64,000 nucleotides of DNA from Zygnema circumcarinatum SAG 698-1b (lineage: Eukaryota; Plantae; Zygnematophyceae): positions 1,364,001 through 1,428,000 of the forward strand of contig CM074812.1 in the NCBI GenBank assembly GCA_037447605.1, written 5' to 3'. Below the pieces are notes generated by a model. That model did no database searches. It was not told where the DNA came from and worked only from the letters and a program-made list of their open reading frames with translations. Below, piece after piece: positions 229-58,924 of this stretch. Numbering within the stretch: position 1 is the stretch's first letter; every line of letters starts with the position of its first letter. Made by a program: the position numbers and the translations under genes.

Positions 229-2470
229 ATGGCGAAGGGGCCTGGTCCTTCCCCAGACTACCTCCGTGCCCTCCTCCGCCATGGCTTCCTCGTGATGTCA
301 GTCGCAATGCTGGCGGGGGCGGAGAGTGAAGGGCGGGGCCGCGGAAACCACCGGTGGATCTCCGACATCGACGAGATTCTGCATGGTTCGGCCCCTGCGT
401 GCCCTTCCCCGTTCATCGATATCTTCACATGATTTTTTTTGCCGTGGAAATTTCTAAACTAATAAGTTATTTCTCACATATTCGCAAATGGGTTGTCATT
501 CTTAATGCATAAGTGGGTTTTCTCAGCTAAATATTATAGCAGATGTGAAGGATGCTATGCAACGTCATCATTAGTGTTGGCGTAACAATTCATTTTAAAA
601 AAATTCTTCCCATCATTTAAAGATCAAGCAAAATCAGTTCTGGAATCCATCATTAAGTCCAAAAATAACCAAACCGTTCCGAATGTAGGGCTTCCACAGG
701 CATATCATCTTTTTCTTCTTCTTCCCTTTCCACTTCCCTTCTCCCCAACTCCCTCTTCCCCTCCTCTCTTCCCTCGTTCTTCACCCATCTCGCCTATCCG
801 TCCTCACTCTCATTTTCACTCACTCCCTCCTCCCTCCCCCTCCCNNNNNNNNNNAGCCCAAAACCGCCGTTGACCAGAGAACAAACTTTCGCTCTTCAGT
901 CGCCCTCTCTCCCAGCCACATTTTGCCGCTGTTAGGTTTTGCGGAAACTGAAACTGTGGCATGTGAACAGGCCGTACGAACCATCGCTTCGACGGAGTGG
1001 CCCTGCCGGAGGAGTTCATTTACGTGTACGACATTGGCAGCGAATACAATGTGGACCTCATGGAGAGGGAGAGTGCGTGGTGGAGCTCTCAGTATGAGGG
1101 AGAGCTGCAGGTCTACAAAATGTTGGCGGAGGAAAACATTGGGCGGACATTTGACCCAGAAAAAGCAACCCTCTTCTACATACCATTCTTTAGCACCCGC
1201 TACGCTCACGTGATTTTCAAAGATCACATCAATTATTCGGACAATAGGGAGTGGAACCGCATATCTGTAATGTTCAACTTGACATCGTCCGCTTACGGAG
1301 AAATTCTCAAGAAAATTCGGAGCCAGTCTCCCTATTTTGATCGGAATAGGGGGAGAGATCACTTTTCTGTGCTGACGCATGACCATGGTAGATGCTCCGC
1401 CCTCACATTTATCGATCCGAACTTGTATGAAGAGATGTTTTTCTTGACGGTAAGTCCAAGAAATTTCATGCTGCTCACCTGCTCCCTTTCCTGAAACCCT
1501 ACCCTTCCCTCTCTCTCTCTCTCTCCCTCTCTCCCTTTTGGTTGTTTATGAAGTCCTCCTCCGGTCGAGCTTATTCCTGACGAATGCTCTTTCTGCGGTG
1601 CAGCTAAATGGAGACAAAATGGTTAGAAGCACACATGCAATAACCGCACGAGAAATGCAGGTTTGAAACTTTAACTCCTCCTTTAACTCCAATCTCTCGG
1701 AAAGAATAAGGGAAGAAGATCTAAGATTACAGGAAGAGATGGAGAGAGCATGTTCTTGCAAATTATCCGTCTTTTGTGAAACATTACGAAATGAAACATC
1801 TAACGGAATCGATCACTTTGTTGATGCTGTTAAATGGGCTATTCTTTCATTTCAGGTTCTAACTTATGATTGGAGCAAACAAGGAAATTGCCAAATTCCC
1901 GACATCCCGTGCTACATGGCAGACCGAGACATTGTTGTCCCTCCGGGTCCCATTCATCTCGCGGAGGAAAAATCATCTCCGTGGGAACATGAAAGAAACG
2001 TCACAGCGCTGTTCCGTTTCTCTGCAGTTATGGATCACAATGTACTCATTCCCTTTTGGCATCACTACGTGCGAACAGAGCTGTACAAGGTGAGCGAATG
2101 TGAAAAGTAAAAAATAACCCACAATGGCTTGTGACATGAAAATTTTGAAACTTGGAATAGTCCCTTGAGGAATCGTCCTCAAAGTTCAATCTTCCGTTTG
2201 GGGAAATCGGGGTTATAGATTTGGAAAGAAAAGCATGTGGAGGGATTTGACTTCGGAGTGAAGTCCGAGGCGGAGAGTGAGGGCGACTGGGAGAGGGCCA
2301 AGTTCTGCGTGTGCCCGCCCGGCCACTCGCAGTGGACTTCGCGATTCCCCAAAGCGATATTGGCGGGATGCATCCCCGTCACCTTCTTCCAGGAGCATGA
2401 CAACCCATGGCAGGTAAGCTCTCTTTCTCTCTCCCTCTCTCTCTGTGTCTCTCTGTCTCTCTGTCCTCGG

Positions 2471-2515
<45 letters not shown>

Positions 2516-2538
2516 GTCTCTCTCTCTCTCTGCCTCTC

Positions 2539-2599
<61 letters not shown>

Positions 2600-5500
2600 C
2601 TCTCTCTATCTCTCACTCACACGCACGAGCATGCAGTCCCTTCTTCCCTCTTCATTCAGTGTCAGCCCCAATTTTCCACACATCTCACTTTTGTATCCCT
2701 TTCATCAGCTCCCTCACTCGCTTCGCCATTTTCCTGTCTTCTCTTCTCCTTTCCCTCTCTCCCCAGTGCTGATTACCTTATTCTGCCAATCCCTTTGCTT
2801 CGTGCTTCTCCTTCCTCCCTTTAGCCTCTTCATTCATCCCCGTCCCTTCTCTCCATTTCTCGCTTTCACTTGCTCTGATCCATCGGCCCCCCTTCTCCGT
2901 CCCTCATTCGCCCTTGTGATCAACCTTGCTCCGTCTCCTCCTTTCTCCCTCTTCCTTTCACCCCCATTTTTCTGCATATCGCAACTTTCCCCCATTTTAC
3001 CTGCTCCTGTGCTCCATTTCCTGTCACCTTTTCTTCTCTTCCCTTCTCGTCTCCCTCCCTCCCCACCTCCCTCTCTCCCTCCCTCCCCCCTGCTTCACTC
3101 CCCTCCCTCCCCTCCCTAGTGCGGTCCCACCCCTCCCTCCCTCCCTCCCCCTCTTCCCTCAGTGCGGTTCTTCCCTCCCTCCCTCCCTCAGTGCCCTCCC
3201 NNNNNNNNNNCAGTGCGGTTCTTCCCTCCCTCCCTCCCTCAGTGCCCTCCCTCCCTCCCTCTCTCTCTCCCTCCCTCCCGCGCAGGACGACATCGACTAC
3301 GAGCTGTTCACTGTGAACATCAACGTTGACGATATGCGCTCTCTCAAGCACCGCCTCGACGCCGTACTGAGTGACGTCACGCGTCTGCGGGTCATGCAGC
3401 AGGAGCTCGCCAAAGTGCAGGCGAGGACTCCCTCCCTCCCTCTCTCCCTCCCTCCCTCTCTCCCTGCTTAAAGGCTCAAGCTTAAAGGGGAAAATTTTCC
3501 TTTCTAGGCATTTCAGGAAGTGGGGTTTTGTGGGGTTTTACCGCAAGCGAAGTTGCTGAGAAAGCGTTCGTTTTGGGGCCACTTTGCAGGAGTTTTTTCT
3601 ATGGGGTTCTGGACATGGCGTATGGGCGCTTTCGTTTCGAGCTCTTCGAAATCGAGCAAAGAAAATTCTCCAGAAAACTGAGAGGATTAATGCTATTTTC
3701 GCAGGGAAAGAGTTAAACAGTGGGAATCGGAGGAGGTTGAGGGAGGTAGAGAACATAGGGCCGGGCAGCGGTCCTGAAAAGTATCTCTACTTTCAAAGGG
3801 AAAACGATCAGTATGCGAGTTATGGAGAAATTATGTCATCGTTTCTGTGTTCATTAAAAGAAGCGGAAACTCTCAATCGGACTTTTGTAATGGATACTGA
3901 TTGGTGGGTTTCAACGGAAAACATAAACGGCGGTGAAAAAATCTTCCAGGATGCGCGACTCTACATCGATCTTGAAAAACTCAGCAAGTAAGCACCTCCA
4001 TGTCTTGCTACTAACTTTTTTTTTTGTTTTTAACTTCAATACCTTCACGATTATATAGCTTTCTTTACTCTCTTGTTCCCTTTATAATTTGAACGGATGT
4101 GTATTCTTAAAACGAGAGAAGAGAAACCCCCCCCTAACAGTCTGTTATTTTTTTTTGTTGGCATGCTGTTTCTAGCCGCCAAGGTGTTGCTTCAAAGTCC
4201 CAATTTTTGCAAGATTGGAGAAAATGGGATAAGGAAAATCCCCAAAAAATCCTCTCTCTGCAGGCGCTTGTTCCCCCCCTCCCCTCCATTGACGAACTCA
4301 AAGGATGTCAAGCAGCAATTCTTTCCCACAACTTCATTTTGCCGGACTCCGAAAGGAAATTCTACAAGTTCTGCAAAGATGAGAAGGTAAACTCTAACAA
4401 CTTGCTCCTGCTTCTGTCTACAAACTCAACCCGTACAATGCTTACATTTTACTTTTACTTTTGCAGAAAATTTCAAAGCTTCCGAACGAGCTGCTATCAC
4501 CCCTCCTATTGGAGATAGTTGAGGCCATCTCGCACGCGATTGGTCGGGAATTTGACAGCGTGGAGCTGAGGAGAGGTGTGCTTTCAGCCTCGCCGCAGAA
4601 GTGGCCAAACTTGGGAATAGACACACAGCCTATGAGGTGAGAGTCTGCAGCAGCTGTGGGAGGGGGGGGGCGGGGGGGAAGGGAGGGGGGGAGGGAGTGG
4701 GGAGGGAGGGAGGGACCCGCTACAGCTATCCCTCTTCCTCTCCATCTCCTCTCTCCTGCTCCCTCTCCCTCTTCCTCTCCCTCTCTCTCCCCATCCCCTT
4801 CCCCTCCCCCTCCCGTCACTTGTCCTCCCACTATTTTCCTCTCACTGTCGCCCCATCCCCATCTCCCTGTCCCTCTCCCATCGTACTGTCTCCCTCTTCT
4901 CTTCGTCTCCCTCCCTCAACCCCTTCCTCCTCTCTCTCCTCCCCTTCCTCTACCTAAACTCGGCCTCTCCCACTCCACACTCCTTTTCCCTAAGTGAGTG
5001 AGAGGAAGCGGGCGTAGGAAAATTTCTTGTGCACGTCGGTATTCACTTTATCCGGCTGAGGGGGCGAGAGCGGGTGATGGGAGACGGAGGGGGAGAGGGA
5101 GTATGTGGGAGAGGAAGAGAGAGATGGGGTGAGGGAGAGGGGGCGAAGGAGAGCGGTAGAGAGAGGGCGAAGGAGAGCGGTAGAGAGAGGGAGTGAATTG
5201 GTGAGGGATAGCGGTAGGGAGAGGAGCAGAGTTTTCGGAGACGGAGAGCGGTAGGGAGTGAGGGAGTGTAAAAAGAGGAAGAGGGAGAGAATGGAGGGGG
5301 GGAGGGAGACGACGAAGAGAGGGAGAGAGTACTCTGCGATAAGAGCAGGGAGGTGGGATGGAGACGGACTTGGAGAGGAAGAGAATGGAAGGAAGAGGAC
5401 GAGGGGCAAAGAGAGGATGAGGGAGAGGGAGATAAGAGGAGGAGAGAGATGAGAGGGAGAGGGAGAGAAGGGGGGCAGAGTGAGAGCAAGTGCGAGAGGC

Positions 5501-6374
5501 AGAGGTTGAGGAAAAGAACTACTCAAACCTCCTCTCATGTTCGCTCCCTACTGCCTTGCTTGTATGGGTCTTTCTCTATGCAGACTGCATCAGAGCATAG
5601 AAAAGAGAATTAGCGCTGGGCGCACACTGTACATTGCCACGGATGAGCGGAGGGCGGGATACTTCAAGAACTTGCGCGAAAAGTATGTTGTGAAGACGCT
5701 GGGAGACTTCAAACATTTGTGGCAGAAGGGCAGCAAGTGGTGGATTGCTGCGCAGAATATTTTGGGAAGTGGGGTGGACCCGATTTTCGATGCACATATG
5801 CAGGTACTTTGTTCTTCTCCGTTTACTTTATGGGGACGAAGTAGAGGTAGGATTGTGCAAACGGTGAATAATTCATATGCATCCCAATAGATATTTCAGA
5901 GCCAACCCTAACTTCTGCAACCTCAATCTTTGCATTATTTCGTTCTCGTTGATAGTTGAAGTCAATTGAAGAAATGAAAGCAAACGACAGAATTACATAT
6001 ATCTACAGTACTCTTATATTTTGTATCGAAATGAAAGGAATCTCACTGATTCGGGCTGTTCAGCACCTTCAAAACAGTGTGGGCCGCACTGCTTAGTCAT
6101 TTAACGGTTTCACCCATTGAGGGGCTAAAAATAAGTGTGGCCGGCACTGATATACGTGGCCCTAACAATACTGAAATGTCCACAAATGGTGGGAATTATA
6201 GCTCACTTGGAGCCTGAAAATTTGAAGGAAAAACTGATTTCTTTGTGGGTTTGGTGCCGGTTTTCGACGCAGATGATGGTCGATTACGCTGTTTGGGAAC
6301 AGGGAACTACGAGGCTTCGGACATTCAACGATTTGACTTCAGACTCAGAAGAAGGGGTGGAAGCAGGGAGGTAG
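229..6374 (+). CDS. Exostosin/GT47 glycosyltransferase fused to a C-terminal SUB1-like (O-fucosyltransferase-like) domain; 11 exons
   Basis: Exons 229-385, 971-1449, 1604-1660, 1856-2089, 2219-2413, 3286-3420 (GC donor), 3590-3987, 4176-4386, 4467-4636, 5584-5803, 6273-6374 splice in frame. N-terminal hydrophobic segment. GT47 motifs FIYVYD, DPEKATLFYIPFF, GRDHF, AKFCVCPPG...ILAGCIPV. Second half (KYLYF, SFLCSLKEAETLNRTFVMD, FLQDWRKW, RTLYIATDE, TFNDLTSD) matches my recollection of the Arabidopsis SUB1 family. Confidence 0.85.
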
Positions 6375-7784
6375 CCGGAGGGAGCTCAGGCAGATGCAGG
6401 TTCTGATTATTGATTGAATTATTTCACAGCATACATAGGGTGCTTTGTCTTTCTATCAGCAAAGCAAAAGCAAATGAACGGGTTTTCAACGAGAAACCCA
6501 TGACGATTTTTCCATAAGACAAGGGACAGAGGGAATGTTCGGCGGTGAGCAGGCGAATTAGATGAAAGGGTGGTGGTGGGTTCGAGGTCGATGGGGTGTG
6601 CCAATTCGTATGGAGGGAGGGAGGAGGCCATGGACGCCATGGGCCCCAAAAGGTGTCCCATGTCCATGGGGGTCAATGGCATGCATGGAAGTAGGCTCAC
6701 ACGAAATAGGAGTCAGGGAGGACCTTTCTGCTTTAATCTTTCAACTCTGCTATTTGTTTAGAATTCGTTTTTCATTAATTCCATTGTGCATATGCGTGTG
6801 TTATAGTTACACATGGTGCATGGAACATACTTGGCGTAGCTCGAATACATACATGAACGCGCCATGTGACCCATGTAGCCATGCAACAAGGAACATTGTA
6901 TGGAGAAGGATGCGAGTTCTTTCTCCATCCTCCACTTCGTAATGTCACTTTCCATTGTTAAACAACAAGACTGGAAATGGATATGGGTCTCGCGCAGGGC
7001 GATGATGCCATGAAATGTGCCTGCATGCGCAACAACAACATGGGGAACCACGAGGTACCAGACGGTCACAATGGACGTAAGGATGAAAGAAACAAAGTCA
7101 TGAGCACAACTTGGCTTCCAGGCCCGACAACAACAACAAGGCTCTAGAGACGTTACGATGGATGACGCGCCAGCTGCAAACTATTTGACGTAATATTGGC
7201 AATGCTGGCGTCACGTAAAAAACCTGACCCCCTAAAAACCTGCCGCGTGAAAATCCCGTCCGAACAAAACTTTCATTTTTCTCAAAAAAGAATAAAACTT
7301 GGAAAATTTCGTGCATCGCTTTTAGCGAGCGCTCTCACAGGCAGACTGAAAGTTTTCATTCCTCTGCCCGTCGGTCGCATGCTCGGGATCGGACGGTCGC
7401 ATGTGTCGGGGTCGGCCCTTTGCACGTGTCACGGACGGTAGATATTTATCGCACGTGTAGGGTCGACGCGCGGGAGAGTGTCGAGGAGGGCCTTTGAACA
7501 TTTTGTGACCGGCCGCTTCGCTGCCGGGAGGAGGGCCTTCACCGAGGGGGGAGGGGGAGGGGGGGAGCGAGAAATGGGGAGAGAGTGAGAGAGAGAAAGA
7601 GAGAGGGAGAGAGGGAGAGAGGGAGAGAGGGAGAGAGGGAGAGAGGGAGAGAGGGAGAGAGGGAGAGAGAGAGAGCCAGTGGAGAGAGGGAGGAAGGATG
7701 GAGGGAAGATTTTAATAGGAGGGAGAGGTTGGAAAGGACGGGGAGAGCAGGAGAGGGACAGTTGCAGAGTTAGAGCTGATAAAT

Positions 7785-10191
7785 ATGGATAGCAAGGCCC
7801 TACTTTTGACACTTACTTTTCTGGTTTATTTTCTTAGCGAGGGTGTCAGTGCTTTCGGGGTGGAAGCGGGAGCTTTGAGGAGGAAGGAGAATGACAGGCA
7901 GGGCGGGCGGAGGCTGCAGGACCAAGTCATCCAGAAGTCGCACCGATGGGTCTCCGACCTCAAGGAGATTCTGAGGGATGGCGACTCAGTCATCATCAAA
8001 GACAGGCACCAAGAGGTAATATTTCTGCCTTTTATAAGCTTCCATTTTGCTCTCACATTCTCACCTTGTGTCCTCTCTATCCCATTACCTCTGCGATCTG
8101 AGTAATCAACGGTTGATCTCGCTTTAATGCCATTCTATGAAGATTTTTTTCAGGAGATGCTGAGCCAGATAATTCGAACGCATACAACATGGCAGTCGTT
8201 GAAGACTCATAAAGCAAACGTGAGGTTGTGCACTGGCGCACCATCTCATGCTCCATTCGTGCAGGGCACCTGGATCTTCGGAGAGGCCCAAACTCGCCTT
8301 ACAGGTATGTTGCCACATGGCGCCATCGCCAGCACATGTTCAAGTTGAACATGTCATGGCAATCAGGATAGCGCACTAACAATGCTCATGCTTGATTCCG
8401 CCTTGATTCCACTCTTTGAACTGTTATGTGGACTCGATATCAACAACCGTTTCTGTGTTGGTTCGTGGCTGGCATTCTTGTATGGAACAGTGTTTGATGT
8501 CGAGCTTTTGCAAGAAGTGCAGCCTGAAGCTTATGCGCGGCAAACATCCGCTCCTCCGACTCTAAGTGCTTTGGCCTTCCTAGAGTCTGCAACGAGCATA
8601 GAGAATGTACAATGGAAGGTACAATGCACGGCTCACAGAAGCACCATGGTTCATGAAACCCACCAATGGAATGCTGCGCATAATATAACATAGTTTTGCG
8701 TTGACAATGTGTTGACCCGTTGACCATCTCAGGGACACATCACAGTATGGCATGCACATAGAAAAAACTTGCGGAAAAAAAGTTAAAGTATCGTCCTCTA
8801 CAAACTATGCATGTGTTCAAAGAGTAATTTTTGGCCTTCTATTTGTCACCGACAGGGATGGGGTGCGGGCATCATGGACCCTATTGCACAATCCTTATCG
8901 CTCAAATGCCGCATATATCCAGGTGGGTGACATTAGAAACTCTTTGTGGGATCTTTGTCCAATATAAGGTGCTAGCAACATTTCAAGTTTGCTCAAAGAT
9001 TATGGTACCAGAATGTAGCACTATGCCTGGTTCCTCCACAATTCCGCATCGACAATGATCTTCTTCTTCTTCTTTACGACCTTGTGCATTCTGAGAGCAG
9101 GGCATCGTGCAAGTGCCCTTTTGGGAGCCCCTCTATTCGAGGCCGAAGCGTACGTCATCTCGCCCGCGAACATGTCGAGCACGTGCTTCTTCAACCTCAG
9201 ATGCCCCTTGAGAAAAGACCTTTCGTTCTTCAACTCGGCTGAGTTCCAAGTAAGTCCTCCTCTCATCCTGCGTAGAGCACGCCTTAAGAACAACATAAAC
9301 ACATTTGTTGGCGAGCTCGACAGCGAATAGTGGGCGCCACCTTCACGTTCATTTCGGCAAGTGGCTAGTCCATGACCGTTCGATCAGACCTCTGATTTGT
9401 GCGACGTGGCATGCATGCATGCATAGGCTCGAAAACATGAAAGAAGCAGCAGCAACGACGTTATGAATTTAACTTTCCCACTGAGGGGAACGACTTTTTA
9501 AAAGCCGCACATTTTGAAGGGCTGTTATGAAAATTCTCTCTCTCTCTCTCTCTCTCCTCTCTCTCACTCTCTCGCTCGCTCTTTATCTCGCTCTCTATCT
9601 CACACGCTTGCGCTCTCTCCCCTCTCCCTCTCTCGCTGTCTCTCTGCCCCCCCCCCCCTCCCCTCTCTCTCTCTGTCTCCTCTAATGCTGCAGGTAGAAT
9701 TTGCATTTTCCGGCAGAGACGAGGGGAATCCGGAGGAAGACAAGGGAATCCTGCACTTGAGCGCTCTCCCCCTCTGCCGCACTCTCCAGGCGCCGCTCTT
9801 CGCTCCTCCTCCGGAAGAGAAACTCTCTCTCTCCGCCTCTCTTTCCATGCAGGAAATGCCGCGCATCACCTATGGAAGTCTTCCTCAAAACAAGCTTGAC
9901 AAGTCTGCTGACAGCATTGCGGCGACGACGAAAAGCACTGCAACTGTTGCCATGTGCATCCGTGCTTATCACGAGCATGGATTGTCGTCCAGCAAGTAAG
10001 CAACTGGTCCTTCCAGCCGTTCTGGTTAAGAAATTAAACTATTGGAATTTTTACTTGCATGTTTTCTGATGCATTGCTCCATTTGAAGCTGCAAGGAGGA
10101 TAATCGAAATCTGCAAGACAGTGTTATGCTGCGCTTTCTGCTTCGTTTGCTGTTTTTTTCCAACTGTAGCTAGAAAGTTTCCATCGTTCTT

Positions 10192-10239
<48 letters not shown>

Positions 10240-12350
10240 AAACATTGACAGTATAGCGGCGCGTGCACCTGTTGCTGTTTTTTTATCGCAGAAAAGCTAC
10301 ACACAGTACCGAGCGTCTAATCGAATTTCTCGACTACCATCTCCTCATTGGCGTCAGCCGGTTCTACTTTTATGACCGGTATGGAATCTTCATGCAAAGA
10401 ACGTTGCAGGTAATAATCATTGCCTGCTTTCTTTATCATTAAAAAATTTAAATCTCTTGGGTCATTGTTTTTCAAGCTTCAATGTCTGTGGTTTCGTTCT
10501 TTCCTTCATGCTGAGCCGGTGAATTTTAACATGGAATATAGATAGGAGGAGGTAAGAATCTTAAAGATTCGCCATGTCGTGACAATTAATTAATTTTTTG
10601 ATTATCAATTTTTTCTTTTTTTTTATCTGCTGCTCTGCAGCCCTACATTGAACGAGGACTTGTCATTCTCCTTCCGTTCCCGCTTTGGTCGGAAGTTTTT
10701 TATCGAAAGGAGTGGTTTTTCAATAAGTCGATCACTCCGTACGAGTATGTTCCTCAACAAATTGCAATACTGCGGCAACGCTTTATGTTTTTCGCTCGAG
10801 GGCTAGCAATGTAAATTTTCCATTTTGAGTTCACCCCATATCCTCTTTCCTTATTGCCATTTTGCAGCTTTCCAGCAGCCTACGATCAAGTCATAAACTA
10901 TGAACACTGCCTTATGCAGGCATGTTCGGATCACCCCCTTCTTCTTTTTGCAGCCTGTTCTTTAGTTCTGTGTGGAGGTTGACCAACTTGTGATTTTACA
11001 AGACTCTGTACATGCATGCTATAATTTTTTAGGACATTTTCTGAAAGGTGGTTTAATGGTTTGGCAGGGTCGCCGAAATGGTGACACGTGGATGGTTTTT
11101 ACTGACACCGACGAGTTCATGCGGGTAAGTTGACTCTATATTGCACTTTTGCGCTTGAAGGAGGCTGGGGAAATCTCTAAGGATGTCATTTTCTTCACCA
11201 GAAATGGTAATATTATAAGAAATGACAAAAGAAATTGCCAAGCTGCTTGTAGGTGATGAGAATATGACTACATTTTTGGAAAATTCTGTGATCACGTTGC
11301 CTTTTGCAGCTTCCAAAACCAACCATAGGCGGCCTCCCCTCCCTGCTTGAGGAAATATCAGAAGCTCATGCAAGAAATCATGACAAAAGAAAACCAGCTG
11401 AAATATCTGTCCAGCGTTTCAATTTCCACGGCGCAAACGAGACCGGAGAGTTAGTACTTGGCAAATGTACATCGCGCTGCAGCGGGCCTATACCGGTAGG
11501 CTGGCTGATACTGGTTCTTAATAAAATCCTGGATGCTTGCATGCTGAAATCTGAGAAATATGCATGAGCCTGTGAAGTTTTTTGATGGGTTTCCATCGTT
11601 TAACCTTTAGAGGCTCCCTCATGTTGTGCAGCAATTGTGGTATAGGAGTGATGGGTCGATAGATACATCTCGAGTTGTTGACTTCAAGAACAAGGTCATC
11701 CTTCGGCCGGAAGCCATGTTGGGGAGCCAACTCCATATTCATCGAGTATCGTAAGTCTTTCATTCATCAGGAATCTCTTCTCTCACTTTCTCTGGAAGTG
11801 CATATACGGTTGAACTTGGTTTCTCTTTTACTGATTCAAATAATCAGATTCAGATTCAGTCCTTTCCAGTCAGTATCTTCGTGTGTTGAGGTCCTTCTGG
11901 CTGCTTTCCTATCGCAGTGGAAGTTTGCCCGAAGAAATGAAGACTTTTCCCGATCCTGATGTGCTCCGAATCAACCATTATCGGTCAACCCCCCATCACT
12001 TGTACATGGCCGATAGGACAATACAATTGTGCAGCTCCTGCTCTAAGGTTCGCGCACTTACTTCACTCTCAATGGTGTAGATTTCGAGTTTTTTGGTTGT
12101 AATCATGCTGCTCTCCTTGTATGTACCACCTATCTATATATGGCTGATCGATTTAGTGATCCGTAATTGACTGTGTTTGCAGGTGGGTAATCCCTACAAG
12201 CCGGATGACCTCTCTGTGGAGGACTTTTCATTGGTATGGGCGGCAAAGGTCCTCGAGCAGTGCACCAAACCCAAGGCGTGTGAAGTTCTTGGAGAGGCCA
12301 AATGTGGGAGCTTGTGCAAAGAGAACATGGAGGAAGGCAAGGACAGATAG
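7785..12350 (+). CDS. Glycosyltransferase family 92 (DUF23)-like protein; about 14 exons
   Basis: Exons 7785-8015, 8154-8304, 8491-8618, 8856-8922, 9101-9249, 9694-9995, 10292-10409, 10641-10744, 10868-10919 (GC donor), 11068-11124, 11310-11495, 11632-11750, 11918-12047, 12183-12350. Signal peptide MDSKALLLTLTFLVYFLSEGVSA. GT92-type motifs VAMCIR, LIEFLDYHLLIGVSRFYFYD, DQVINYEHCL, WMVFTDTDEF (DxD), LRINHY. Confidence 0.8.
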
Positions 12351-13566: not shown

Positions 13567-16297
13567 CTAGTCATCTCTGCTGTAGCGCGCCTCTTGCCGC
13601 GCCATGAGTCCCAGCGCCGCCGCCCTTATCGCTCGCTGGCGGAGCTCCTCGTCCCGCCAATAGTGGCGCACCGCGATGCCGCCATGGCCGGTCATCTCGC
13701 GGAAGGGCACCACCGCGATGTGCCGCTTGTACCTATGCGCGATGGCGTTCACCCTCTTCTGCTCCCACGGATGCAGATTGAAATATGTCGGGTCCGGGTC
13801 ATGGAACCACTCGTCCAGGAACTGCAAGAACAGGTGAGGGACAGTGGGTCAGTTTATGGAATATATGCCGATTCTTTTCCCTTTAGGAAGGTAGGGTTAA
13901 GTGGTCGATTAGGGTTAGGGTTAGAGTGAGGGCTCGGGTTGAGATCATGGTCAGGGTTAGACAGAAGGTTAGGGTTAGGGATATGGTTGGGAATAGGGTT
14001 GGGGTTAGGGTTAGGGCAATAGGATTAGGGTTAGAGATAGCGTTAGGTTCTGGGGTGAGGGTAAGAATTAGGGTTAGGGTTGAAAATTTTGGTTTCCAAG
14101 CAATTTAGTGTTTACAAAATTTTCTAAGTCTGCGAGGTTGGTTTGGGGTTATTGGTGACCTCCTAGCTTCATGTCAACTCCCTCCCTTGTCTTAATATCT
14201 TTACCTACGCTGAAGGCCCTGATATCTCTCCATTTTCCTTTAGTGAAAGTCTACCATCGCCCTCTCTCCCTCTCTCCCTCTCTCCCTCTCTCTCACCTGG
14301 TGCGTGAGAGATGAATTTCGCAACATGAATTGGCCCGCATTCATGAAACCCCAAAAGCACGCTCCTTCCTCATCGTCAGGCTTCGTAAAAAAGGAATCCT
14401 TTTCTTGCGAGTTTTTCCCTCCACACGCTCCATCCGTACTATCTCCATTTCGTGGAAACAGAGCAATTAGACCGTCCTCCACCTCTGAAGGTTCTAGAAG
14501 TTTCACCGGATCCTTCGGAAACCATAACTGAGTGGTCATGTTGACATTTCTCGCACGAATCTTATTGAAATAGTCCTGTTCAGTTCTCAAAAATACGCCA
14601 AAATCACCAACAAACTTACAAAGGAGTGTAAGAAAGTATATCAAGTGTATTTTTTTCCTTTGTTAAGTAGAGTTTCCCATTGACAATTTTAGACACGGTG
14701 AGAAGGGCAGCAGCAAGTATTTGAACATATTTTTGTCCTTACCGGCTCAGTGAGCTTGTGCAGCCATTGCTCAATAGACAGGTCGTGACCGCTCATTCGA
14801 AAATATGCGTCCGAGTCCAAAAACATGACCCATTCGCAGCAGCATTGGAGCTGCGCCTTTGCAAACAGAATCTGCAGTTGAATGAACGAATTAAAAAAAT
14901 CACTTCAGCATTGAAGAAGCTGCATAATTCTACGCCTTAATGCTTCGAAGTCCTTCTCGAGCCTCCCCCCCTCTCTCTCTCTCTCTCTCTTCCTCTGTCT
15001 CGAGCCTCCCCCCCCCCCCCCCCCCCCNNNNNNNNNNCCCCCCCCCCCCCCCCCCTTCTCTCTTTCTCTTGTTCTGTCCCTCCTTTTGGCATCCAAGAGA
15101 CTCACCTACGACATGGACTCATACTGTACCTGCAGAATCTTCTCATCTAACTTCTATGTTTTTTTTTTTTTTTTGGGTTTGGTCATGTGGGAAAAAGAAG
15201 AGAGTTTAAGGCTAAGCTTTACCTTGTACCAAGATGCCGCGCGTTTCGGCGTTGTTTCATAGTCCTTTGCTCTCGCGAGGATGAATCGGTAGCCATGCCT
15301 TTCTGCATAGGCTCTAGACATGTTTCATGCATTAACGAATGCGAGTAAGAACATCATACGGCGCATGAGAAGAGAGAGAGGGAGAGGGAGGGAGGGAGGG
15401 GGAGAGAGAAAAAGGGAGCGAGTGGGGGAGAGGAAGAGAGAGAGAGAGAGAGCAGGGGGGGCGCAGAGAGGGGGAAACAGAGAAGGGAAGAGATACTCCC
15501 TAGTTTCTGTAAAGCGGTCCTTAATCCAAAAACAGATTCAAACATTCTTTCATGCGAATTATAAGTCAGAAATTTAATTAATAAACCATAAAAGGATTTG
15601 ATGTCTGGACATCAACTTTTTGGCAGACCCACCGGTTGATCACTCTTGAAAATAACCAAAATGGCGCAAATTCGCCCCACTTTTCCAAATCCGGATAATT
15701 CATTTTGAATCGGCGGTCGTCCATAAATAGAATGCATCCAGGGGGACCTCCCTTTACTGGCTGGAAAAATCAATTCAAAAGAAGAAAAAAAAAGTGGAAG
15801 GAAAAAGGGAACCAAACTTAAACCAAAAACTTAAATCTTTTCTTGATCTTTCAGCACTTGAAAGGGAAAAATAAGAAAGGAAAGACCTGCTCCTGTCTCA
15901 ACCATTTCCTCCCTCTTACTTTTATTTTATTTTCTGAGCCGTTAACATTACCGAAAGCCTAAACTACGCGATCCATGAAAGCCCCAATTCAGTTCTTGTG
16001 CTAAAAATATTCATAGAAGAAATAACTGTAAGTGGAATTCAGAACCTCACTCCTTCCATTAAGAAATAAATCTTCAAAAATGAAGATACAAGAGTTGTTA
16101 CATCATGCTTTATTCATCCTTCTCATTATTTTTTTTTAAATAAAAATTATTACTACCTTATTCTCTTGCGAGCGGAGGATCGTGTCGATGTTTGAAACCC
16201 ATCGCCGCGAGCCGTGATGGGTCCCTCCGTCAATGCATAAAAAAAATAACGGTAAAAGATAAAATGTGCTGATCGCTGTCGGAAAGTTCCATGCCAT
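13567..16297 (-). CDS. GT34 (GMA12/MNN10-type) glycosyltransferase-like protein, paralog A; 6 exons
   Basis: Exons 16297-16157 (MAWNFPTAISTFYLLPLFFLCIDG...RRWVSNIDTILR), 15760-15633, 15313-15223 (AYAERHGY...SWYK), 14871-14743 (WVMFLDSDAYF), 14575-14297 (FMNAGQFMLRNS), 13821-13567 (FLDEW...WEQ). Exons 1-4 are missing from the ORF track. Exon structure is collinear with paralog B. Confidence 0.8.
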
Positions 16298-18610: not shown

Positions 18611-19679
18611 CTACCGCGGCCTCCCATTGGCCTGCACGAGCTCCGCCAGCGTCTGTCCGAGTTCCCTGAGCGCCACCGGTTTGACGAGCACCGTGTCCAT
18701 GCCCACCTCCAGGCACGCCTCCCTTATGCCCTTGTCCGTGCGGGCCGTCAAACCCACTATCAGCGGCCGCGCGTCGGGTCTGAACACGAGACCCACAAAA
18801 TAGGAACATGAATCCAACACCCCAAACCCCACAACATTAAGCGTGAACCCACACCCGAAACCCACAGCATTGAGCATGAACCCACACCCCAAACCCCACA
18901 ACAACAACAACAACGCCCATGTAAAGCGGCCGTCACCTGAACACTTGATGTATTCTTCTGGACACATCGAAGCCGTCGATTTCCGGCATGCACACGTCCA
19001 ACAGTACGGCGTCGATCGGACGGCCCCGCCGCACTCCGAGCTCCGCCAAACACTCCACCGCGGACTCCACCGCAGTCACTTCGCAGCCCAAAGTCTCCAA
19101 CATCGATTGGATCGCCACTCTGTTCACATTGTTATCATCGACCACCTGCATGCATGGCGCCCCTCCCCTTCCAAATGAATGACTTACACGGCATACGTAA
19201 TATAAATATATGCATATATAAAACATAGATAGAACTGGGAACTAATTGCTTGCCATACGACCCACCAAAACTGTACGTAATCGCAAGGAAACCCTTAGCA
19301 CGGTACAACTGAATTGGGTCATCACCAGCACATGGAGATCCGCGAGCTCATTCACAAGCGCTTCCAAAAGAGAGGTTTGAGAATTTCGTTCGTTCAACAT
19401 GGAAAGCTGCAGACGGACGGCACATGTGACGGTACAGCCACAGCCCTCTCCTTCACTGGTCATCCATATGTGGCCCTCCATTAGCTGCACAGCAACCGAC
19501 CCACCACCCCGAACAGGACCAAATTCAGACAAATTGTTGCAGACATAGACCTGCTTCGTCTGCTCTCCCGAATGCGGGGAATCTCTCACTCTCCCTCTCA
19601 CGCTCTCTCTCGCTGTCTCTCTCTATCTCTCCCACTCTCTCTCTCTTTTTCTCCCTCTCTCTCTTTTTTTCTCTCTCTC

Positions 19680-19711
<32 letters not shown>

Positions 19712-20822
19712 CCTCTCTCTCGTGGACTCTCCCTCACCTCCACAAACTTTTGGCAAATGGCGAGCCCTAGCCCGTTCCCTCCATAGCTTCCCAGCGCGTT
19801 CCCCTTCTTCCCCAGCCCGAATGGCTGAATTTGTGAAGAAATTTCGCTCTCACTGAACCCTTTACCCGTGTCTTTTACCTCTATTTGAATGTATGCGTAT
19901 CTGTCGGCTTGAACCGGCTGAAAGGGACACACACACAACCCAATTACTATCCAAAAAAACAAGCATTCAATCTCTGAATACATGTATATATATATAGGAC
20001 GTTCAACTCTCCATTTTTCTCTTTACTCTTCTTTATAATCACATTCATGCTGCTGCGACTCACCTCCCATGACGGATTCCGTAAATCTCTGGGACTGTTG
20101 GGCCCATCCAAACGGACTTCCATATTCACAGAACCCTGTGCATAGAAACCACAACCTCTCACTACTTTAACAAAAGCAATTAACATTCCAAGAATCGTCA
20201 AAGCATAAAATTTGAGGATTTTCTTTGAACACATGTCTTCATACTTCAGCATGTGTGTATGATTAATTTCGTCCAAAAGGGAAAGGACGATTTCCTAGGA
20301 TCAACACATACCTTCTTTGTACCCTTCACTGCATTCCCAATCACATTCAAAGTTGTTTGAAGAAGTCGCTTTTCATCTCCAATCACCCATTGCGGAATAT
20401 CTTCCGCGAGATGCATTGAAAATTCAAGTCCTTTACTTCTCGCCATCGGCCAAGCAAGTTTCGCGGTTTCTTGGAACATAGCGAGGAGATCGAAGGGAGT
20501 CATTTCGAGCTCAAGACTGCCACACAACACCCAAAAAAAAAAAAAAAAAAACAAAACAAAAAAAAAAGCTCAAAATCATCCATAAACTGGCGCACATGTG
20601 CGACGGAAGCAAGATTGTTCAGAAAGCGAATGTTTTCAATGTTTGAAGAATGGAGTTTACCCGCCCTCTTCAAGCCGAGAAAACTCCAAAACATCGTTGA
20701 TAAGAGTGGACAGAAGGGATGAGCTCTTCAGTACGGTCTCCACCATCGGAACTTGTTCCATCGTCAAATTGCCTTCCTGATTTTCCCAATTCCATACATC
20801 CAACTGCTCAACAGCGCGAAAC

Positions 20823-20868
<46 letters not shown>

Positions 20869-23800
20869 AACCAAGACCTCCCATTCGGACCCTTCATAGA
20901 GAGAGGGAAAGAGAGACGGGGGGGGGAAGTGGCGGAGAGAAAGGGCGAGAGCAACCAACACCCCCCATTCGGACCTGTAGAGAGTGGGAGAGAGAGAAAG
21001 AGAGGAAGAGAAGAGAGAGAGAGCAACCAAGAGAGAGCAACCAAGACCTCCCATTCGGGCCCAGCAAACGAGACCTCTCATTCCTGCCCTTGATAAAGTC
21101 GAAATTTTCCGCTTGATAAAGTCACCTGTAAGATGGAAGCGAGCGCTATAATGGCCTGCAGGGGCGTCCTCATCTCGTGGTTCATAACGGCCAAAAAATC
21201 GTTCCGAGCTCGAACCGCGGTTTCTGCTCTTTGGCGAGCAGTCTGAAGGGCTCGGTTCTGCTCTACAAGGGCATCTCTGGTTTTCTGAACCGCAGAAAAA
21301 TTACATTTTCAATATGAAGTTAAAGAGTGCGAAAATCTTAGAATCTTAGAATCTAAGAATTTTCAAAGTACAAAGTTTGTATGTCGAGCTTTTATTTTAG
21401 TTTTTTTTTTTAATTTTGATATGATTCATACTTGGGAATCTTCCAGCACTGCCGCATGGGAAAGAGCAACAGCCACTTGGTCTGCCACAACTTCCACCAT
21501 CTCCACTTCATGGGCTTTCCATTGCCTGCAGAACAGAAAAAAAGCTCTTATGTCAACCAACCCAATATCACGGTGCTTTTGATCCCTCTTAAGGTGCGTA
21601 AAATCATGATCAAGTGCTAATCTCCTTTCCTCCCTCCCTCCCTTCCTCCTCCACCTCCCCCTCTCTCCCTTCCTCCTCCCCTCCTCCTCCTCCCTTTCCT
21701 CCCCTCCCTCTCCCTCCCCTCTCTCTCCCTTCCCTCCCTCTCCTTCCTCCCCTCCTCCCTCCCCCCTCCCCCTTCCCCTCCCTCCCGCCCTTCCTGCCTC
21801 GCCCTCCATCTATGTAGCTGGTAAAGATTAGGTTAGTTTAAAGTGGTCTACCTTCTGGAATCTGCAGGAAGCACGAGCACCATTATAGCATACGATGATT
21901 CGGACATTTTCGGCGATTCTCCGGTTCTGAGGTTGTACACTTGGAGCAATGGCAGCCTGACAGCTGTCCTCAACCCACCCACCCTCTGTAACTTCCAGAT
22001 CTTTCTGTCTCTCCCTCTCCNNNNNNNNNNTCCCTCTCCCTCTCCCTCTCCCTCTCCCTCTCCCTCTCCCTCTACCTCTCCCCTCCCCCTCAGACAACTA
22101 CTCCCTAAATCATCCCTAACTCATTAGAACTAAAATCATACTGGAAAAGTGTGTGAGAGAAAAGGTGTGCAATTAGGGCTGATATTTACCTGCCATTGCC
22201 GACTCCATTGTTCCCCTTGGAGTACTCGCCTTTCCAAGGAGGCAGTCTGGTTGAATTCTGACTGCTTGAGGAGTCCTTATTATGGTCTGAACAGTGGAAT
22301 CGGAGGCCGGAACAGTGATAGGGACTTGAATCAACCTCCTCTCCAGCTCATGTGTGAGCTCCAAATTCTCACCAGCTGAAAACAGCATACAAAATAACAT
22401 AAAAATCTCGACCTAAACTTATGTTTCCTTGGTTGAAAAATTGGACAAAAAAAGGAGGGTGGGAGGTAGACGAGAGTGTAGCAGGGGATGGAGAGGAGTG
22501 AAATTTCTCTCCCTACATTGGTCCGGCATCCAAATGGTGCAATTGTCGAGTGAAAGTGTATGCGCGAGCTCTACAAGAGTTGTGTTTAGAATGGTGAGTC
22601 GGTCGAGCGTTGACCGAATTTCATGTGTGAGCATTCGCACGTGCCGGCCCACCTCCTCCTGCCTTCGAATCACTCCCATTTCTCGGTCCAATTGAGCCGC
22701 TTTGTGCTGCAGGAATAGCTCTCGAACCTGCGATTCATCTCCCATGCAACAACTCATTAACAAGCTCTCTAACACAATCTACAAAGTGACCCATATGCAA
22801 AAGAACAGACAAAAGAACGAAACGAACGGCAAAGGGAAGAAGCATTTTGTAACTAAAGCTTGATCAACAGTGGATTGTTCAAGACCCACATGAGTATATG
22901 GGAGCAATTGGGAGTGGGATGGATTACCTTGATATTGAGCAGAGCCGGAATGACTCGCACAAGGAGGAAGGCGGTCGCGCAGGAGACCGCCGCTGTCAGC
23001 ACTTTGAGCACAGTCTGCGTCAGGGCTATTGTGCGAGGGTGGGGGCCGTAGGTCCAGATGGACACGAAGTGGGTGAGCCCTGCATGCATAGAAACGAGCG
23101 AAAGAAAGAAAGGTGAGAGAGAGAGAGAGGGGGAGAGAGAGAGAGAGAGCGAGAGAGAGAGAGAGGGGGAGGGAGGGGGAGAGAGAGAGAGAGAGGGAGA
23201 GAGAGAGGGAGAGAGAGGGAGAGAGAGAGAGGGGAGAGAGAGAGAAGAGAGAGAGAAGAGAGAGAGAGAGGGAGAGAGAGAGAGAGCGAGAGAGAGGGAG
23301 AGAGAGAGAGAGGGAGAGAGAGAGGGGGAGAGAGAGAGAGAGAGGGAGAGAGAGAGAAAGAGATTGTGATTGGAACCAAGATTTGCGCGCTTTTATTTGA
23401 TTGAATAATGATGAGCAATGGCAATCGGCATTAAGCAATTTTTTTTACAACACAAACAAAGGCTTCTAGAAGTGCTTCGTCACTGGCTGTTGAGAGTTTG
23501 AACAAGCCATTGTCAAGGAGAAGGCGGGAATCGAAGCTAGTTTTTTCTTTGTTCTATGACTTGAAATTTAATTCCATATTGCTGAACGAAAAAAAGGAAA
23601 ATGCGTACCGCATAGAACTATGAAGAGGCCGAACTGGAGAAGCACCCACCGGTGTGGGAAAACTTTGGACCTCAGAAAGAAATAGAGAAGCTCCAAAGGA
23701 ATGGAGAAATATGCAAGCGCTATGAGAAAGTCGCTGCAAACCACGAGTTTCAAGCCCACAAATCATTAAAGCAGAATTCCACTATCAAACAAGAAACTAC

Positions 23801-24404
23801 TTCCTTCCTCCTTTCCTAATAAGGTCTATGCTTATCCTTCGTTTGAATGTTTTTTGTAACTCTTGGAATGTCTCCAAGTCATGTTTCGGAACCATGAAGA
23901 AGGAGAGAGAGAGAGAGATAGGGGGGAGAGAGAGAGAGAGGAGGGCTGTTGAGTAGTGGATCTAAATGAAGTCAACAAGGTCAATAAAGCCAACTAATCC
24001 CATACCTTGCCAGCTGGCACCGTGCAACGCCTTCATCCAAACCAAACATGTCTTCATCACACGAGCAGACAGCTGGAAGCACTCGAGGGAGAGGATGAAG
24101 CCTGCACCCCGTTTAGAACTTCAAAATAATCATTCAATTTATGAAACAAACCTAAGCAGCAACGAATGGATCAGTCCTACATATAAAAACCAAACAATGA
24201 TTAAAAAAAAAAAAAAACGGAGGGCGAAGTGATGAAACAGAAACGCCTTCTCGCATGACGTGCAGGTTGCTTTGATCCTCTCGGACTTTCTTTCTCGTAC
24301 CATAAACAACCATTGTGAATGTACAACTCGTGCGATATCTTTCATACAAAGTGAAGTCAAGCTGCGGCAATCCTTTGCTGGTTCTACTTCTGCAAGACCC
24401 CATG

Positions 24405-24442
<38 letters not shown>

Positions 24443-24829
24443 ACTCTCACCTCATGAATAGTGTTCAGCAGAGTTATGCTTCAGCCTCTATTCAAGCTTT
24501 AACTTCTCAGCTGCCCTTCCGTCTTTCTTAAAACTCATTCCAAATCCCAATCCCAGGTGCTTTGCACCCCTCCATGCGGCACCTTCTCCTCGCTCGGAGT
24601 GGTAGATGTGAGAGTTATATTGTGACAGGAAACCAACGACGATCGAGCTGCCAACTGCAAATCCTAATTGGGCCCCAAAACTAAATGAAATTCAAAAGCA
24701 ATCGAGAAAAAGAGAAGTAAGAACATGCCTGCCCTCCCCTCCAGAGGCTCTCACAGCCGCGGAAGCCGCAGCTGCGACGGCCGCCACGGCTGCCAGAGCT
24801 GTGCTCACACCCAGCCACCACCGCACCAT
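18611..24829 (-). CDS. ETR: Ethylene receptor (signal peptide, ethylene-binding TM domain, GAF, His kinase, receiver); 16 exons
   Basis: Exons 24829-24729 (GC donor), 24101-24006, 23733-23609, 23079-22928, 22727-22517, 22375-22190, 21963-21852, 21525-21432, 21284-21126, 20776-20661, 20516-20312, 20135-20064, 19917-19738, 19484-19326, 19145-18937, 18779-18611. Motifs [90 protein letters not shown]. Confidence 0.95.
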
Positions 24830-26497: not shown

Positions 26498-26530
<33 letters not shown>

Positions 26531-28325: not shown

Positions 28326-28369
<44 letters not shown>

Positions 28370-28551
28370 AAAAATGGGTGCAGGCGACACCCGGTTTTGA
28401 AGATGTGTCGGCGGACCGATTACTCGAATTTCAGGACCCTCACGTGGTAGGAGTAGCTATTAAGGGAGAGGTTAGCGCTGGAAAGAAGGTGAAAGCTTCC
28501 TCAGGGGGATTCAAAGGTTTCTCCAGTAAAGGGGAGAGCTCACGGAAATAA
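26018..28551 (+). CDS. Class I SAM-dependent methyltransferase (Methyltransf_11 / METTL7-like), probably plastid-targeted; 7 exons
   Basis: Exons 26018-26199, 26591-26714, 26890-27052, 27626-27708, 27838-27924, 28034-28165, 28384-28551. Ser/Arg/Ala-rich N-terminus. Motif I-like VVDLNIGPGRNLYY, motif II LPAASYDAVVS, motif III ETSRILKAGKPLIFVE. Confidence 0.8.
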
Positions 28552-29595
28552 GTTAAAACTTTTAAAAGAGAGTTGTGACGCTACACTGTTGTTCCAGTGT
28601 ATGAAAACGAGAGTCAACGCAGTTTTGTCCTGTTCGAAAGAGTTTAAGAGAGTTGGGAAATAGAAGCAAGGAGCGGGGCAAGTTTGCAGTTTGAGGCTTA
28701 ATTGCAGGCCATTTCCCCGTTTGTGTACAGGAAGGATTTTTGTATTTGAGTTGAAGTTCGAATACTTGTTAGTGTCATGAAATTTTATGTTTATTATGTT
28801 ATGCTTGTAAGGGAGAAAAGGATTGTACGGTGAGAACTTGTACTCTGAGAAATCCTCAATGTCAATGAACATTGCGATATTGTCAAAACATTGACATATG
28901 TCAAACCATTGACAAACGTCCTGAGACGACACAAAGGAAACTCTCTGGTAAAGTATACTCCAACTAAAATCTTTACAAGTTGAGCCAAACTTGGCCACCC
29001 GAGCTAAGAATTAAAATTGTGGAAAAGAAAGATGGCAGAGAAAACTAACAAGTGTGGCAGAGCACGCCTCTAGATTGTTGCCTGACCGAGCCCAGAAATC
29101 GGTGCTGACCAGGCTTTATTTGCGAACTTCGCATGAATGCAAAGAATTTGAGATGCTGAAATGTGTACAGACCTGGATAAAGTCACAACGGAGTCATGTG
29201 CCGAACGATGGACGGTGCCACTCGATGGGGATGAATCCCCATTGTGGAAAGAAAGGACGGCGCCTTTGAGGAATCTCCAACAGCCATTTCTCTCTCTGCC
29301 TCTCTGCCTCTCTCCCTCTCCCTCTCTCCCGTCTCCTCTGGTATCCCTCCGTCTCCCACTCCCCCACTTCTCTCTCACTCGCTCTTTCCCGATAACCCTC
29401 CCCGCCCCCTTTCCCTTCCGCTGCCTCCCTTCAACTCTCGCTCTCCCTTCCCCTCCCCCCCACTCACTCTCTCCCCCCCTCGATCTCTCCCTGCCCCTTC
29501 CACCTCTCTCCCCCTCCTCTTGAACAGCGCAAGCGTGTCTTGCCTCCCCGCAGTTTATTCAGCCCCAAATTGCACCTCCATATCACATCAATCAA

Positions 29596-31766
29596 CTAGC
29601 TAAGCTCCCCATAATTCTCCGCCATGGCTATGTAAGCTGTTAGCGCTTGCTGCAGCTTCCTTAGCCGTTCCCTTTCCGTCCCCTCCCCCGACCAATAGTG
29701 GCGTACTCGCCGGCCATGGTGGCCGGCGAGCTCCTTCATGGGGACGAGAGCAATCTGCTCCTTGTAGCGGCTGGCTATGGCGTTCAGCCTCCCCTGCTCC
29801 CACGGTCTTGCAATGTCGAACTTTCCACTAGGATCGTTGTACCATTCGTCCAAAAACTGCATTCAAACCCCAAATTTCGAAGGTTAATTATGGAATCTGT
29901 GTAGATTATGGTCATCTGTTTATTGGGGTTAACCCCTCCAATGTGCTGAATATGTCAGTGAGGAAAAAATCTACCTTGTGGGTGGCAGTGGAATTTCGGA
30001 GAAGGAAGACTCCCGTGTTGATGAAACCCAGTTCGCAAGTTTCACTTCCTTGGTCTGGAAAAAACTCCACGACGCCTTCCGGGAACTTTCCAGCACATGC
30101 GCCTTCTTCGCTGTCTCCATTCCTTGGAAAGAGGCCGATGACGTCATCGTCCGAGTCTGGAGGCTGAAGGAGCTTTCTTGGGTCTTGAGGAAACCACGTT
30201 TGATTCTCCAAATCTACTCCGTAGTCGGCTTCAAGCCATTTGAAATAGTCCTAAAGACACACACACTTTCTTCACTTTAAGAAGAAAGAAAATTGTGCAT
30301 CTTATACTGTGTGGGATCTTTTTCTAAGCGAGTGAGGCCACTTCTTGGATCAGCGCAGTTCGAAATAAAGTACTGACAAATGGTGGTATGTATGAGAGTG
30401 GCACCTTCGAGGTAAGTTCTGAAAGCCAAGATTCAACGGAGAGGCTGTGCTCGTCCATTCGGAAGTATGCGTCGGAGTCGAGGAAGAAGGCCCACTTGCA
30501 GCAGCACTGCAGCTGCTCCTGGAGGAGGCGGATCTGGGGCAAATGAAGCGCTGTTGTCAGCGAGGGAGAGGGAGAGGGAGAGGGAGAGGGAGAGGGAGAG
30601 GGAGAGGGAGAGGGAGAGAGGGGGGAGAGAAACGATGCGATAGATGGGAGCATGAAAAGAAGCATTTGGTGTCACCTTCTTCCATGCGGGAGCCAACCTC
30701 CTCTCATCATGAAATTTTTCTCCCGAGCTCATTACGTAGCGGTAGCCATGCCGCCGAGCGTACCCTCTGCTTCCACCATGCATCAGCGCGCACCATGTCA
30801 TTTAACTCTAGGAAAGACTACAACATGGCTCATACAAACCAGCCACTTCTCTTCTTGGTAGACTCCAAATTCTCCTCCCCCAACCTCCCAAACCTTTTTC
30901 CTTTTCCGCCCTCCTTTCCGCCCTCCACTCTCACATGCGACTCTAGCGACTTCAACTACTATTCACATGCATAAACTGTGACTACATCGCTATCCTTCAC
31001 CATGTTGTTCAGTATTAACTAGTTCACACATTTCGAACATGTGAAACAATGCAGCCAAACCCACCGGTTAATGATCCGGGACGCCGTCCAATAGGGGAGG
31101 TCCCTTTGGCCCTCCTCAAAGGCCTCCAGTCCGTCGTAGTGCAGTGAGCGGTCGTCTAACTGCACAATGCAACCGCCCGAATGCCGCTCCCGCCGCTGCA
31201 TGCACAGCCATGCACGTCCTGCGATCTGCTGTTAGTATGGCATTACATTTCCCTTTCCGGGGGGGGGGGAGGGAAGAGGGGATGGGTTAGGAGGCGGGGT
31301 AGGAGGAGAGGGGAGGGAGGGAGAGGACGAGGGAGGGAGAGAGAAAGGAGAGGGAGGAGGAGGAGAAGGGGAGAAGGAAAGGAGGAGGATAGATATGGGA
31401 AAAGGGAGGGGGGGAGAGGGAAATGGAGGGGTGAGAAGGAAATGGAAGGGAAGTAGGGAGGGGGGCGAGGCTGGAATATAGATGTGCTGGAGAGTGAGAG
31501 ACAAGGAAGGAAAAGGAAGAGAGAGCGAGCGTGCGAGAGAGAGATAGAGAGAGAAGCAGAGGCCTTGCCTGCTCGTGGCGCCGGTCCTTTATGACGACAG
31601 AGTTCCCGTCCCTTAGAATCTCGCTGAGGTCCGACACCCAGAGCCGCGTCTTCCTCGTGGTTTCCACCTCCCCTCCAAGCACGTTCCTGCCCTCCTCGCC
31701 GGACACAGCCGCCGCTACGGTCACACCCCATGCAAGCAGCAGCGCTGCTATCCGCACACCAATCAT
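29596..31766 (-). CDS. GT34 (GMA12/MNN10-type) glycosyltransferase-like protein, paralog B; 6 exons
   Basis: Exons 31766-31569 (GC donor), about 31228-31065, 30766-30676, 30533-30405, 30250-29975, 29856-29596. Signal peptide MIGVRIAALLLAWGVTVAAA. Motifs YARRHGY, AWKK, FFLDSDAYF, FINTGVFLLRNS, WEQGRLN. Confidence 0.82.

Positions 31767-52043: not shown

Positions 52044-58924
<6,881 letters not shown>

Follow-up and report, generated by a model that had tools for sequence, protein, structure and literature searches.

A conserved first-exon peptide in neighbouring GT47, GT92 and GT34-like genes of the alga Zygnema circumcarinatum

The DNA analysed here, referred to as the window, is a stretch of 64 kb from Zygnema circumcarinatum SAG 698-1b (contig CM074812.1, positions 1,364,001 to 1,428,000) with a G+C content of 49.7% and intron-rich genes. 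Four of its genes encode the peptide core W-[VI]-S-[DN]-[LI]-x-x-I-L at the 3' end of exon 1, following a short signal-peptide-like segment. The order along the window is a GT47/SUB1-like fusion gene (229-6374, +), a GT92 gene (7785-12350, +), GT34-like gene A (16297-13567, -), an ETR1-like ethylene receptor gene (24829-~18610, -) and GT34-like gene B (31766-29596, -), beyond which follow a GT14-like gene, an enolase gene and MYB genes. The motif is carried by the GT47/SUB1-like fusion, the GT92 and both GT34-like genes and by no other site in the window, i.e. by glycosyltransferase genes of three families within 31 kb with the ethylene receptor gene in between.

229..385 (+): GT47/SUB1-like gene, exon 1; encodes a signal-peptide-like segment, then a short linker and the motif; donor in phase 1 (open frame, RNA joint 385 to 971)
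971..6374 (+): GT47/SUB1-like gene, exons 2-11; exostosin GT47 domain followed by a DUF7075/SUB1-like one (PF03016, PF23272)
7785..8015 (+): GT92 gene, exon 1; encodes a signal-peptide-like segment, then a linker and the motif in its long form; donor in phase 0 (co-linear with P0002, a spliced homologue)
8154..12350 (+): GT92 gene, exons 2-14; 653-residue open model with DxD (PF01697 on homologue P0002)
16157..16297 (-): GT34-like A, exon 1; encodes a signal-peptide-like segment followed by the motif; GT donor in phase 0 (modelled)
13567..15760 (-): GT34-like A, exons 2-6; 340-residue open model with DxD (weak PF05637)
31569..31766 (-): GT34-like B, exon 1; encodes a signal-peptide-like segment, then a linker and the motif in its long form; predicted GC donor in phase 0 (modelled)
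29596..31195 (-): GT34-like B, exons 2-6; 361-residue open model, intron phases as in GT34-like A (modelled)
349..384 (+): motif copy 1, short form, GT47/SUB1-like gene (exact translation, profile)
7923..8015 (+): motif copy 2, long form of 31 codons, core 7941-7979, GT92 gene (27/31 amino acids identical to P0002 41-71)
16169..16207 (-): motif copy 3, short form, GT34-like A (exact translation, profile)
31572..31646 (-): motif copy 4, long form, core 31608-31646, GT34-like B (17/24 amino acids identical to the GT92 copy)

The peptide and the genes that carry it

An earlier note on this DNA had listed four such peptides, and exact translation reproduces all of them (4/4), with R/L-W-[VI]-S-[DN]-[LI]-x-[ET]-I-L as the fuller consensus of the four cores. 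Building a profile, as proposed there, and applying it within the window separates the copies far from background, each held-out copy in a leave-one-out test scoring 38.7-44.7 compared to 22-27 for the best non-motif score among 127,924 six-frame positions. Pairwise alignments of the first exons were equalled by 0/5000 shuffles for four pairs and by 6/5000 and 25/5000 for the remaining two. A degenerate DNA pattern finds exactly 4 sites in the window versus 0.33 expected; being built from the same four copies, it shows only the absence of a fifth, which the six-frame profile did not detect either. The placement just before intron 1 holds in that all copies lie in exon 1, while the number of codons from W to the intron varies (9, 14, 22 and 23; phases 1, 0, 0 and 0), and the proposed extent fits the core in all four genes but falls short in GT92 and GT34-B, which share the long form. 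A special GT47/GT34-A subtype of the motif is unsupported (16-mer scores of 46 vs 47). Further candidate copies were rejected: the RRRL linker does not rank among the three best-scoring sites of the GT47/SUB1-like fusion, the score of the RRLL helix located upstream of P0005 is only 8.8, and the GT14-like gene has a W-x-S stretch with a score of 8.6, a value equalled by 42% of shuffles.

In agreement with the suggestion that the motif is not a named domain, no first exon matches Pfam (best E 0.16), the motif profile has no match in the PDB, and exon-1 peptides reach at best 0.79, a low recognition, in the ESM Atlas. Scans of metagenomes, prokaryotic genomes and viruses returned no confirmed locus, P0001 and P0004 being set aside as low-complexity repeats. 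We found no description of the motif in the literature, which is weak evidence of novelty as short peptides are poorly searchable.

The motif exon is spliced onto catalytic exons in the GT47 gene and in a homologue of the GT92 gene, as the earlier note had presumed. For GT47, contigs from 4 runs of 3 studies join 385 to 971 in frame with GT..AG ends, spanning the assembly gap 845-854 in intron 1, the only gap between a motif and its catalytic exons, and continue via 1449/1604, 1660/1856 and 2089/2219 into exon 6 without extra letters. The runs are not recorded as RNA and were treated as such because they contain exons only. A second gap, 3201-3210, lies in intron 5, and an RNA loose end at 2414 runs on into the start of exon 6. 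The resulting model of 784 amino acids is open throughout, with exons 2-6 joined in RNA and the later joins taken from the model. Pfam confirms the proposed GT47 and GT92 labels by PF03016 on the GT47 gene (E 2.9e-18 in exon 2, 4.5e-09 in exon 5) and PF01697 on P0002.

Some features of the GT47 gene are noted in their own right. Within its domain (2219-2413, +) a Lys occupies the usually acidic position of R-x-x-E/D-A, the GT47 family consensus, so that the GT47 half may be altered or inactive. The RNA contigs extend 1455-1770 letters beyond exon 5, and the 1233 modelled coding letters fit within this length. At 298-327 (+) in exon 1, contigs break in two runs (X2 and X5) with lower upstream depth (79 vs 101; 60 vs 101), and a second sequence may enter here between start codon and motif. 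Introns modelled with GC donors are needed at 3420 (+), 10919 (+) and 31569 (-), three introns of the tagged genes.

P0002, a GT92 protein of 643 amino acids (PF01697, E 3.8e-12), is the one genuine match of a profile search across 1.84 billion representatives. It is encoded on a single intron-less contig of run SRR8128906, from another sample that may belong to a study of Zygnema mats on Svalbard (PMC6899726), and is co-linear with all 14 exons of the GT92 gene of the window, exon 1 included; the window model carries its DxD at residue 447. The best RNA run holds a fraction of 0.38 of the words of 7780-9260, compared to calculated fractions of 0.40 for five exons and 0.26 without exon 1. The motif region of P0002 as query retrieved P0002 alone and GT47 exon 2 had no match, in a database that barely covers this lineage, the window's own proteins not turning up in it. 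Full-length P0002 retrieved one paralogue and one distant protein. On contig L003 the signal-peptide frame (100-465) of this GT92 paralogue is out of frame with its catalytic frame (420-2003), and its upstream letters differ in L004, which suggests alternative acceptors.

Genes of the window were searched exon by exon or with database proteins. For the two GT34-like models, in which the frame stays open, exons agree in length and phase and intron 1 is free of assembly gaps, the GT34 label of the earlier note is only partly sustained: both proteins contain DxD, and their motif order agrees with the usual GT34 order (MNN10/GMA12/XXT), but Pfam support is weak, with only GT34-A exon 3 matching PF05637 (E 0.013, 15.7 bits vs the 23-bit cut-off), and the exon-by-exon search gave no PDB match. 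The family assignment is hence weak. The gap 15028-15037 is in intron 3 of GT34-A, whose flanking exons match GT34-B in length and phase. Exon 5 of both genes (14297-14575 and 29975-30250, -) encodes a common acidic, Cys-containing insertion of ~60 residues with no Pfam match. ESM Atlas matches of GT34-B exon 6 to integrase SAM-like proteins share few features and were disbelieved.

Selection on the peptide and history of the first exon

We show that purifying selection acts on the peptide itself, the motif block being as conserved as the catalytic exons. Comparing the GT92 gene with P0002, the 31-residue block is identical in 27/31 amino acids, with codon positions 1, 2 and 3 identical in 28/31, 29/31 and 14/31, respectively. 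Catalytic exons reach 79-94% amino acid identity and most non-catalytic exons 35-62%, whereas signal peptide and linker are barely alignable. The long forms of GT92 and GT34-B, two unrelated enzymes, retain identity in 17/24 amino acids at 12/24 third positions, and similarity of their flanking DNA is limited to simple repeats. This combination indicates that the peptide is old and maintained at the protein level, and a recent DNA duplication is rejected.

The history of the motif differs from that of the catalytic domains. Exon 1 of GT34-B scores 108 against exon 1 of GT92 and 39 against that of its own paralogue GT34-A; the intron follows W after 22 vs 23 codons in GT34-B and GT92, both in phase 0, and GT34-A carries the core only. 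Since GT92 and GT34-B have in common the 24-residue form that GT34-A lacks, we show from the exon sequences that first exons were exchanged or duplicated between unrelated neighbouring genes. Judged from sequence, the motif is real, under selection and undescribed within the literature and databases searched; its function is what we infer below.

Topology of the N-termini and possible functions

Five N-termini show a short hydrophobic core with a best 11-residue hydropathy of 2.3-2.5 and small residues at the likely -3/-1 positions, uncharged runs reaching 13-19 residues. No later 19-residue window exceeds 1.21, i.e. there is no second membrane segment, and the C-termini carry no KDEL/HDEL. 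By eye and hydropathy the N-terminal segments look like cleaved signal peptides, as the earlier note had considered, and the mature enzymes look soluble in the lumen because of the missing second segment and KDEL/HDEL. The motif W follows the hydrophobic segment at residue 33-55. The proposed amphipathic helix gains support from a helical hydrophobic moment of the core of 0.61-0.80, within the top 1-5% of shuffles.

We propose, with about an even chance of being correct, that the peptide serves as a portable docking helix in the lumen, by which the enzymes are retained or assembled. Exon 1 is in this view a portable cassette consisting of signal peptide, variable linker and conserved peptide, which spread long ago among unrelated neighbouring glycosyltransferase genes via exon duplication or exchange, selection keeping the peptide while signal peptide and linker drifted. 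Signal cleavage would leave the enzymes soluble in the lumen of the endoplasmic reticulum and Golgi and in need of a tether. The peptide would fold into a short amphipathic helix with a face of W, V/I, L/I, I and L. With this face it would bind a protein surface shared by all four enzymes, which could belong to a membrane anchor, to a scaffold or to the corresponding helix of another enzyme, and in this way the enzymes would be kept in the Golgi and brought together to make one glycan of the wall or mucilage. Such a shared surface, or the helix's own kind, is suggested as the simplest target for a sequence-specific amphipathic helix that occurs on GT-A as well as GT-B enzymes. The tag is selective and not a general feature, given that the GT14-like glycosyltransferase of the window has a signal peptide and no significant copy.

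Several points weigh against docking. The partner protein is hypothetical. Both the GT14-like gene and the GT92 paralogue (P0005 locus, L003/L004) have signal peptides without the motif, so signal-peptide enzymes can apparently do without it. Just one homologue, P0002, comes from outside the window. AlphaFold returns for the N-terminal piece a mean predicted local distance difference test score (pLDDT) of 56 with helix over part of the core only, and the full-length model is unusable (pLDDT 32), neither model being good enough to search for similar folds. Cleavage of the signal was called from hydropathy alone, and such a call is hard even for IRX10 (PMC12235428).

The peptide might alternatively be a signal for forward sorting that a cargo receptor recognises, directing the proteins into vesicles of a special class or out to mucilage or wall, similar to an N-terminal vacuolar sorting propeptide. 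This would fit the site right behind a cleavable signal, the sequence-specific conservation and the independence of catalytic family. We regard it as unlikely, as GT92 and both GT34-like proteins have kept an intact DxD and the Golgi lumen is where nucleotide-sugar donors are supplied, and as typical sorting signals are shorter than the long form of 24-31 residues.

The hydrophobic moment and the uncharged N-terminal runs would also suit uncleaved signal anchors, or a helix lying on the lumenal membrane leaflet, the peptide then being a membrane-contacting stem element without protein partner; signal peptides of IRX10 homologues have been proposed as cryptic anchors (PMC12235428). The helix comprises only ~9-12 residues, however, and its distance from the hydrophobic segment is highly variable, as the position of W demonstrates. 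Lipid-binding helices usually conserve pattern, not sequence, whereas the invariant W and S and the near-invariant acidic/amide position suggest a specific surface. We consider this reading rather improbable.

The peptide might instead be a pro-region, removed during maturation, that aids folding, blocks the active site or displays a site for a protease. In GT92, GT34-B and P0002 the segment from signal peptide to motif contains an R-x-hydrophobic-L/Q stretch, which we take to resemble a site-1 protease site. This stretch is absent from GT47 and GT34-A, and cutting there, upstream of the motif, would leave the motif on the enzyme; a single peptide would moreover need to fit both GT-A and GT-B folds, and we consider a pro-region quite doubtful. 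That the peptide is a functionless passenger of a shuffled signal-peptide exon would agree with the evident exchange of exon 1 and the needed signal peptide it supplies, but appears largely refuted and highly improbable, since signal peptides diverged while the peptide was kept and third codon positions are near saturation within and between families.

Returning to the docking helix, a more far-reaching version, possible but on the whole unlikely, would have it act as a portable lumenal address code, in which any glycosyltransferase, regardless of fold, would join one Golgi assembly on acquiring this first exon, and the physical cluster of tagged genes would build one algal wall or mucilage polysaccharide. 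If true, this would be a mechanism of enzyme-complex evolution for which we found no precedent, and the tag would predict pathway membership from sequence.

Among the neighbours, the GT14-like/Branch gene (PF02485; 44870-48721, -) is a fifth glycosyltransferase. The ETR1-like ethylene receptor gene (18610-24829, -) between the GT34-like genes has confirmed ETR1_N and HisKA domains and an extra N-terminal signal-peptide-like segment without the motif; gap 22021-22030 lies within this unrelated gene. Arrays of telomere-like units are located within introns of GT34-A (13900-14080) and of the enolase gene (57490-58640).

Comparison with known systems

Plant wall biology still asks by what means unrelated glycosyltransferases come together and anchorless ones remain in the Golgi. 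One bacterial protein resembles the peptide itself:

L002 3001-3594: P0003, small prokaryote-type repeat protein with five units (no Pfam family)

In each of its five core-like repeats, much like in the long form, the core leads into Gly and then a short, strand-like run of hydrophobic residues. P0003 differs in its prokaryote-type locus and missing signal peptide, and its E of 4e-4, the best of 1.8 billion proteins, is reached only on summing repeats. The resemblance is most likely convergence and at most a hint at a helix-turn-strand unit.

A single adaptor, GOLPH3/Vps74, reads short features at the N-termini of numerous unrelated enzymes of glycosylation (PMC8421267), which resembles the algal case as a cross-family N-terminal signal. 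The signals it reads belong to type II membrane proteins, where they are basic, loosely defined and located in the cytosol (PMC8421267), in contrast to the algal peptide, which is lumenal, sequence-conserved and has acidic residues. The motif was rejected as a GOLPH3/Vps74 client signal as it sits behind the hydrophobic segment and not in a basic cytosolic tail.

In the GT92 enzyme GALS1 the stem mediates a homodimer (PMC11062476, citing Prabhakar 2023), resembling the algal case in the use of a GT92 stem region for protein-protein assembly. This takes place within a single family, and P0002 has no sequence match among PDB chains, GALS1 included, leaving stem homology unsupported.

The tag would act like the partner-held anchorless catalytic enzymes of the xylan synthase complex and of GAUT1, in which IRX10 (GT47) is held by IRX9/IRX14 (GT43) and GAUT1 by GAUT5/6/7 (GT8), keeping anchorless enzymes in the Golgi lumen (PMC11062476, PMC12235428). 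The comparison concerns the mode of retention, the window genes not being taken as IRX10/GAUT orthologues. With regard to a missing membrane anchor of the IRX10/GAUT1 type, we observed in the algal proteins signal-peptide-like N-termini, no second hydrophobic segment and no KDEL/HDEL, with cleavage predicted from hydropathy. With regard to a polysaccharide biosynthetic gene cluster, a term for non-homologous enzyme genes that lie together, are co-expressed and serve one product, we observed the physical clustering. Those systems are family-specific pairs, and the available parts of both sources describe no short tag across unrelated client families.

The case is an example of first exons being exchanged between unrelated neighbouring genes, here in a close algal relative of land plants, and the tag of 12-31 residues could be used as a partner bait, as a search key for pathway members and possibly as a tool to co-locate enzymes. 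Whereas the known plant-wall cases are pairwise and family-specific, the algal tag extends across GT-A and GT-B families.

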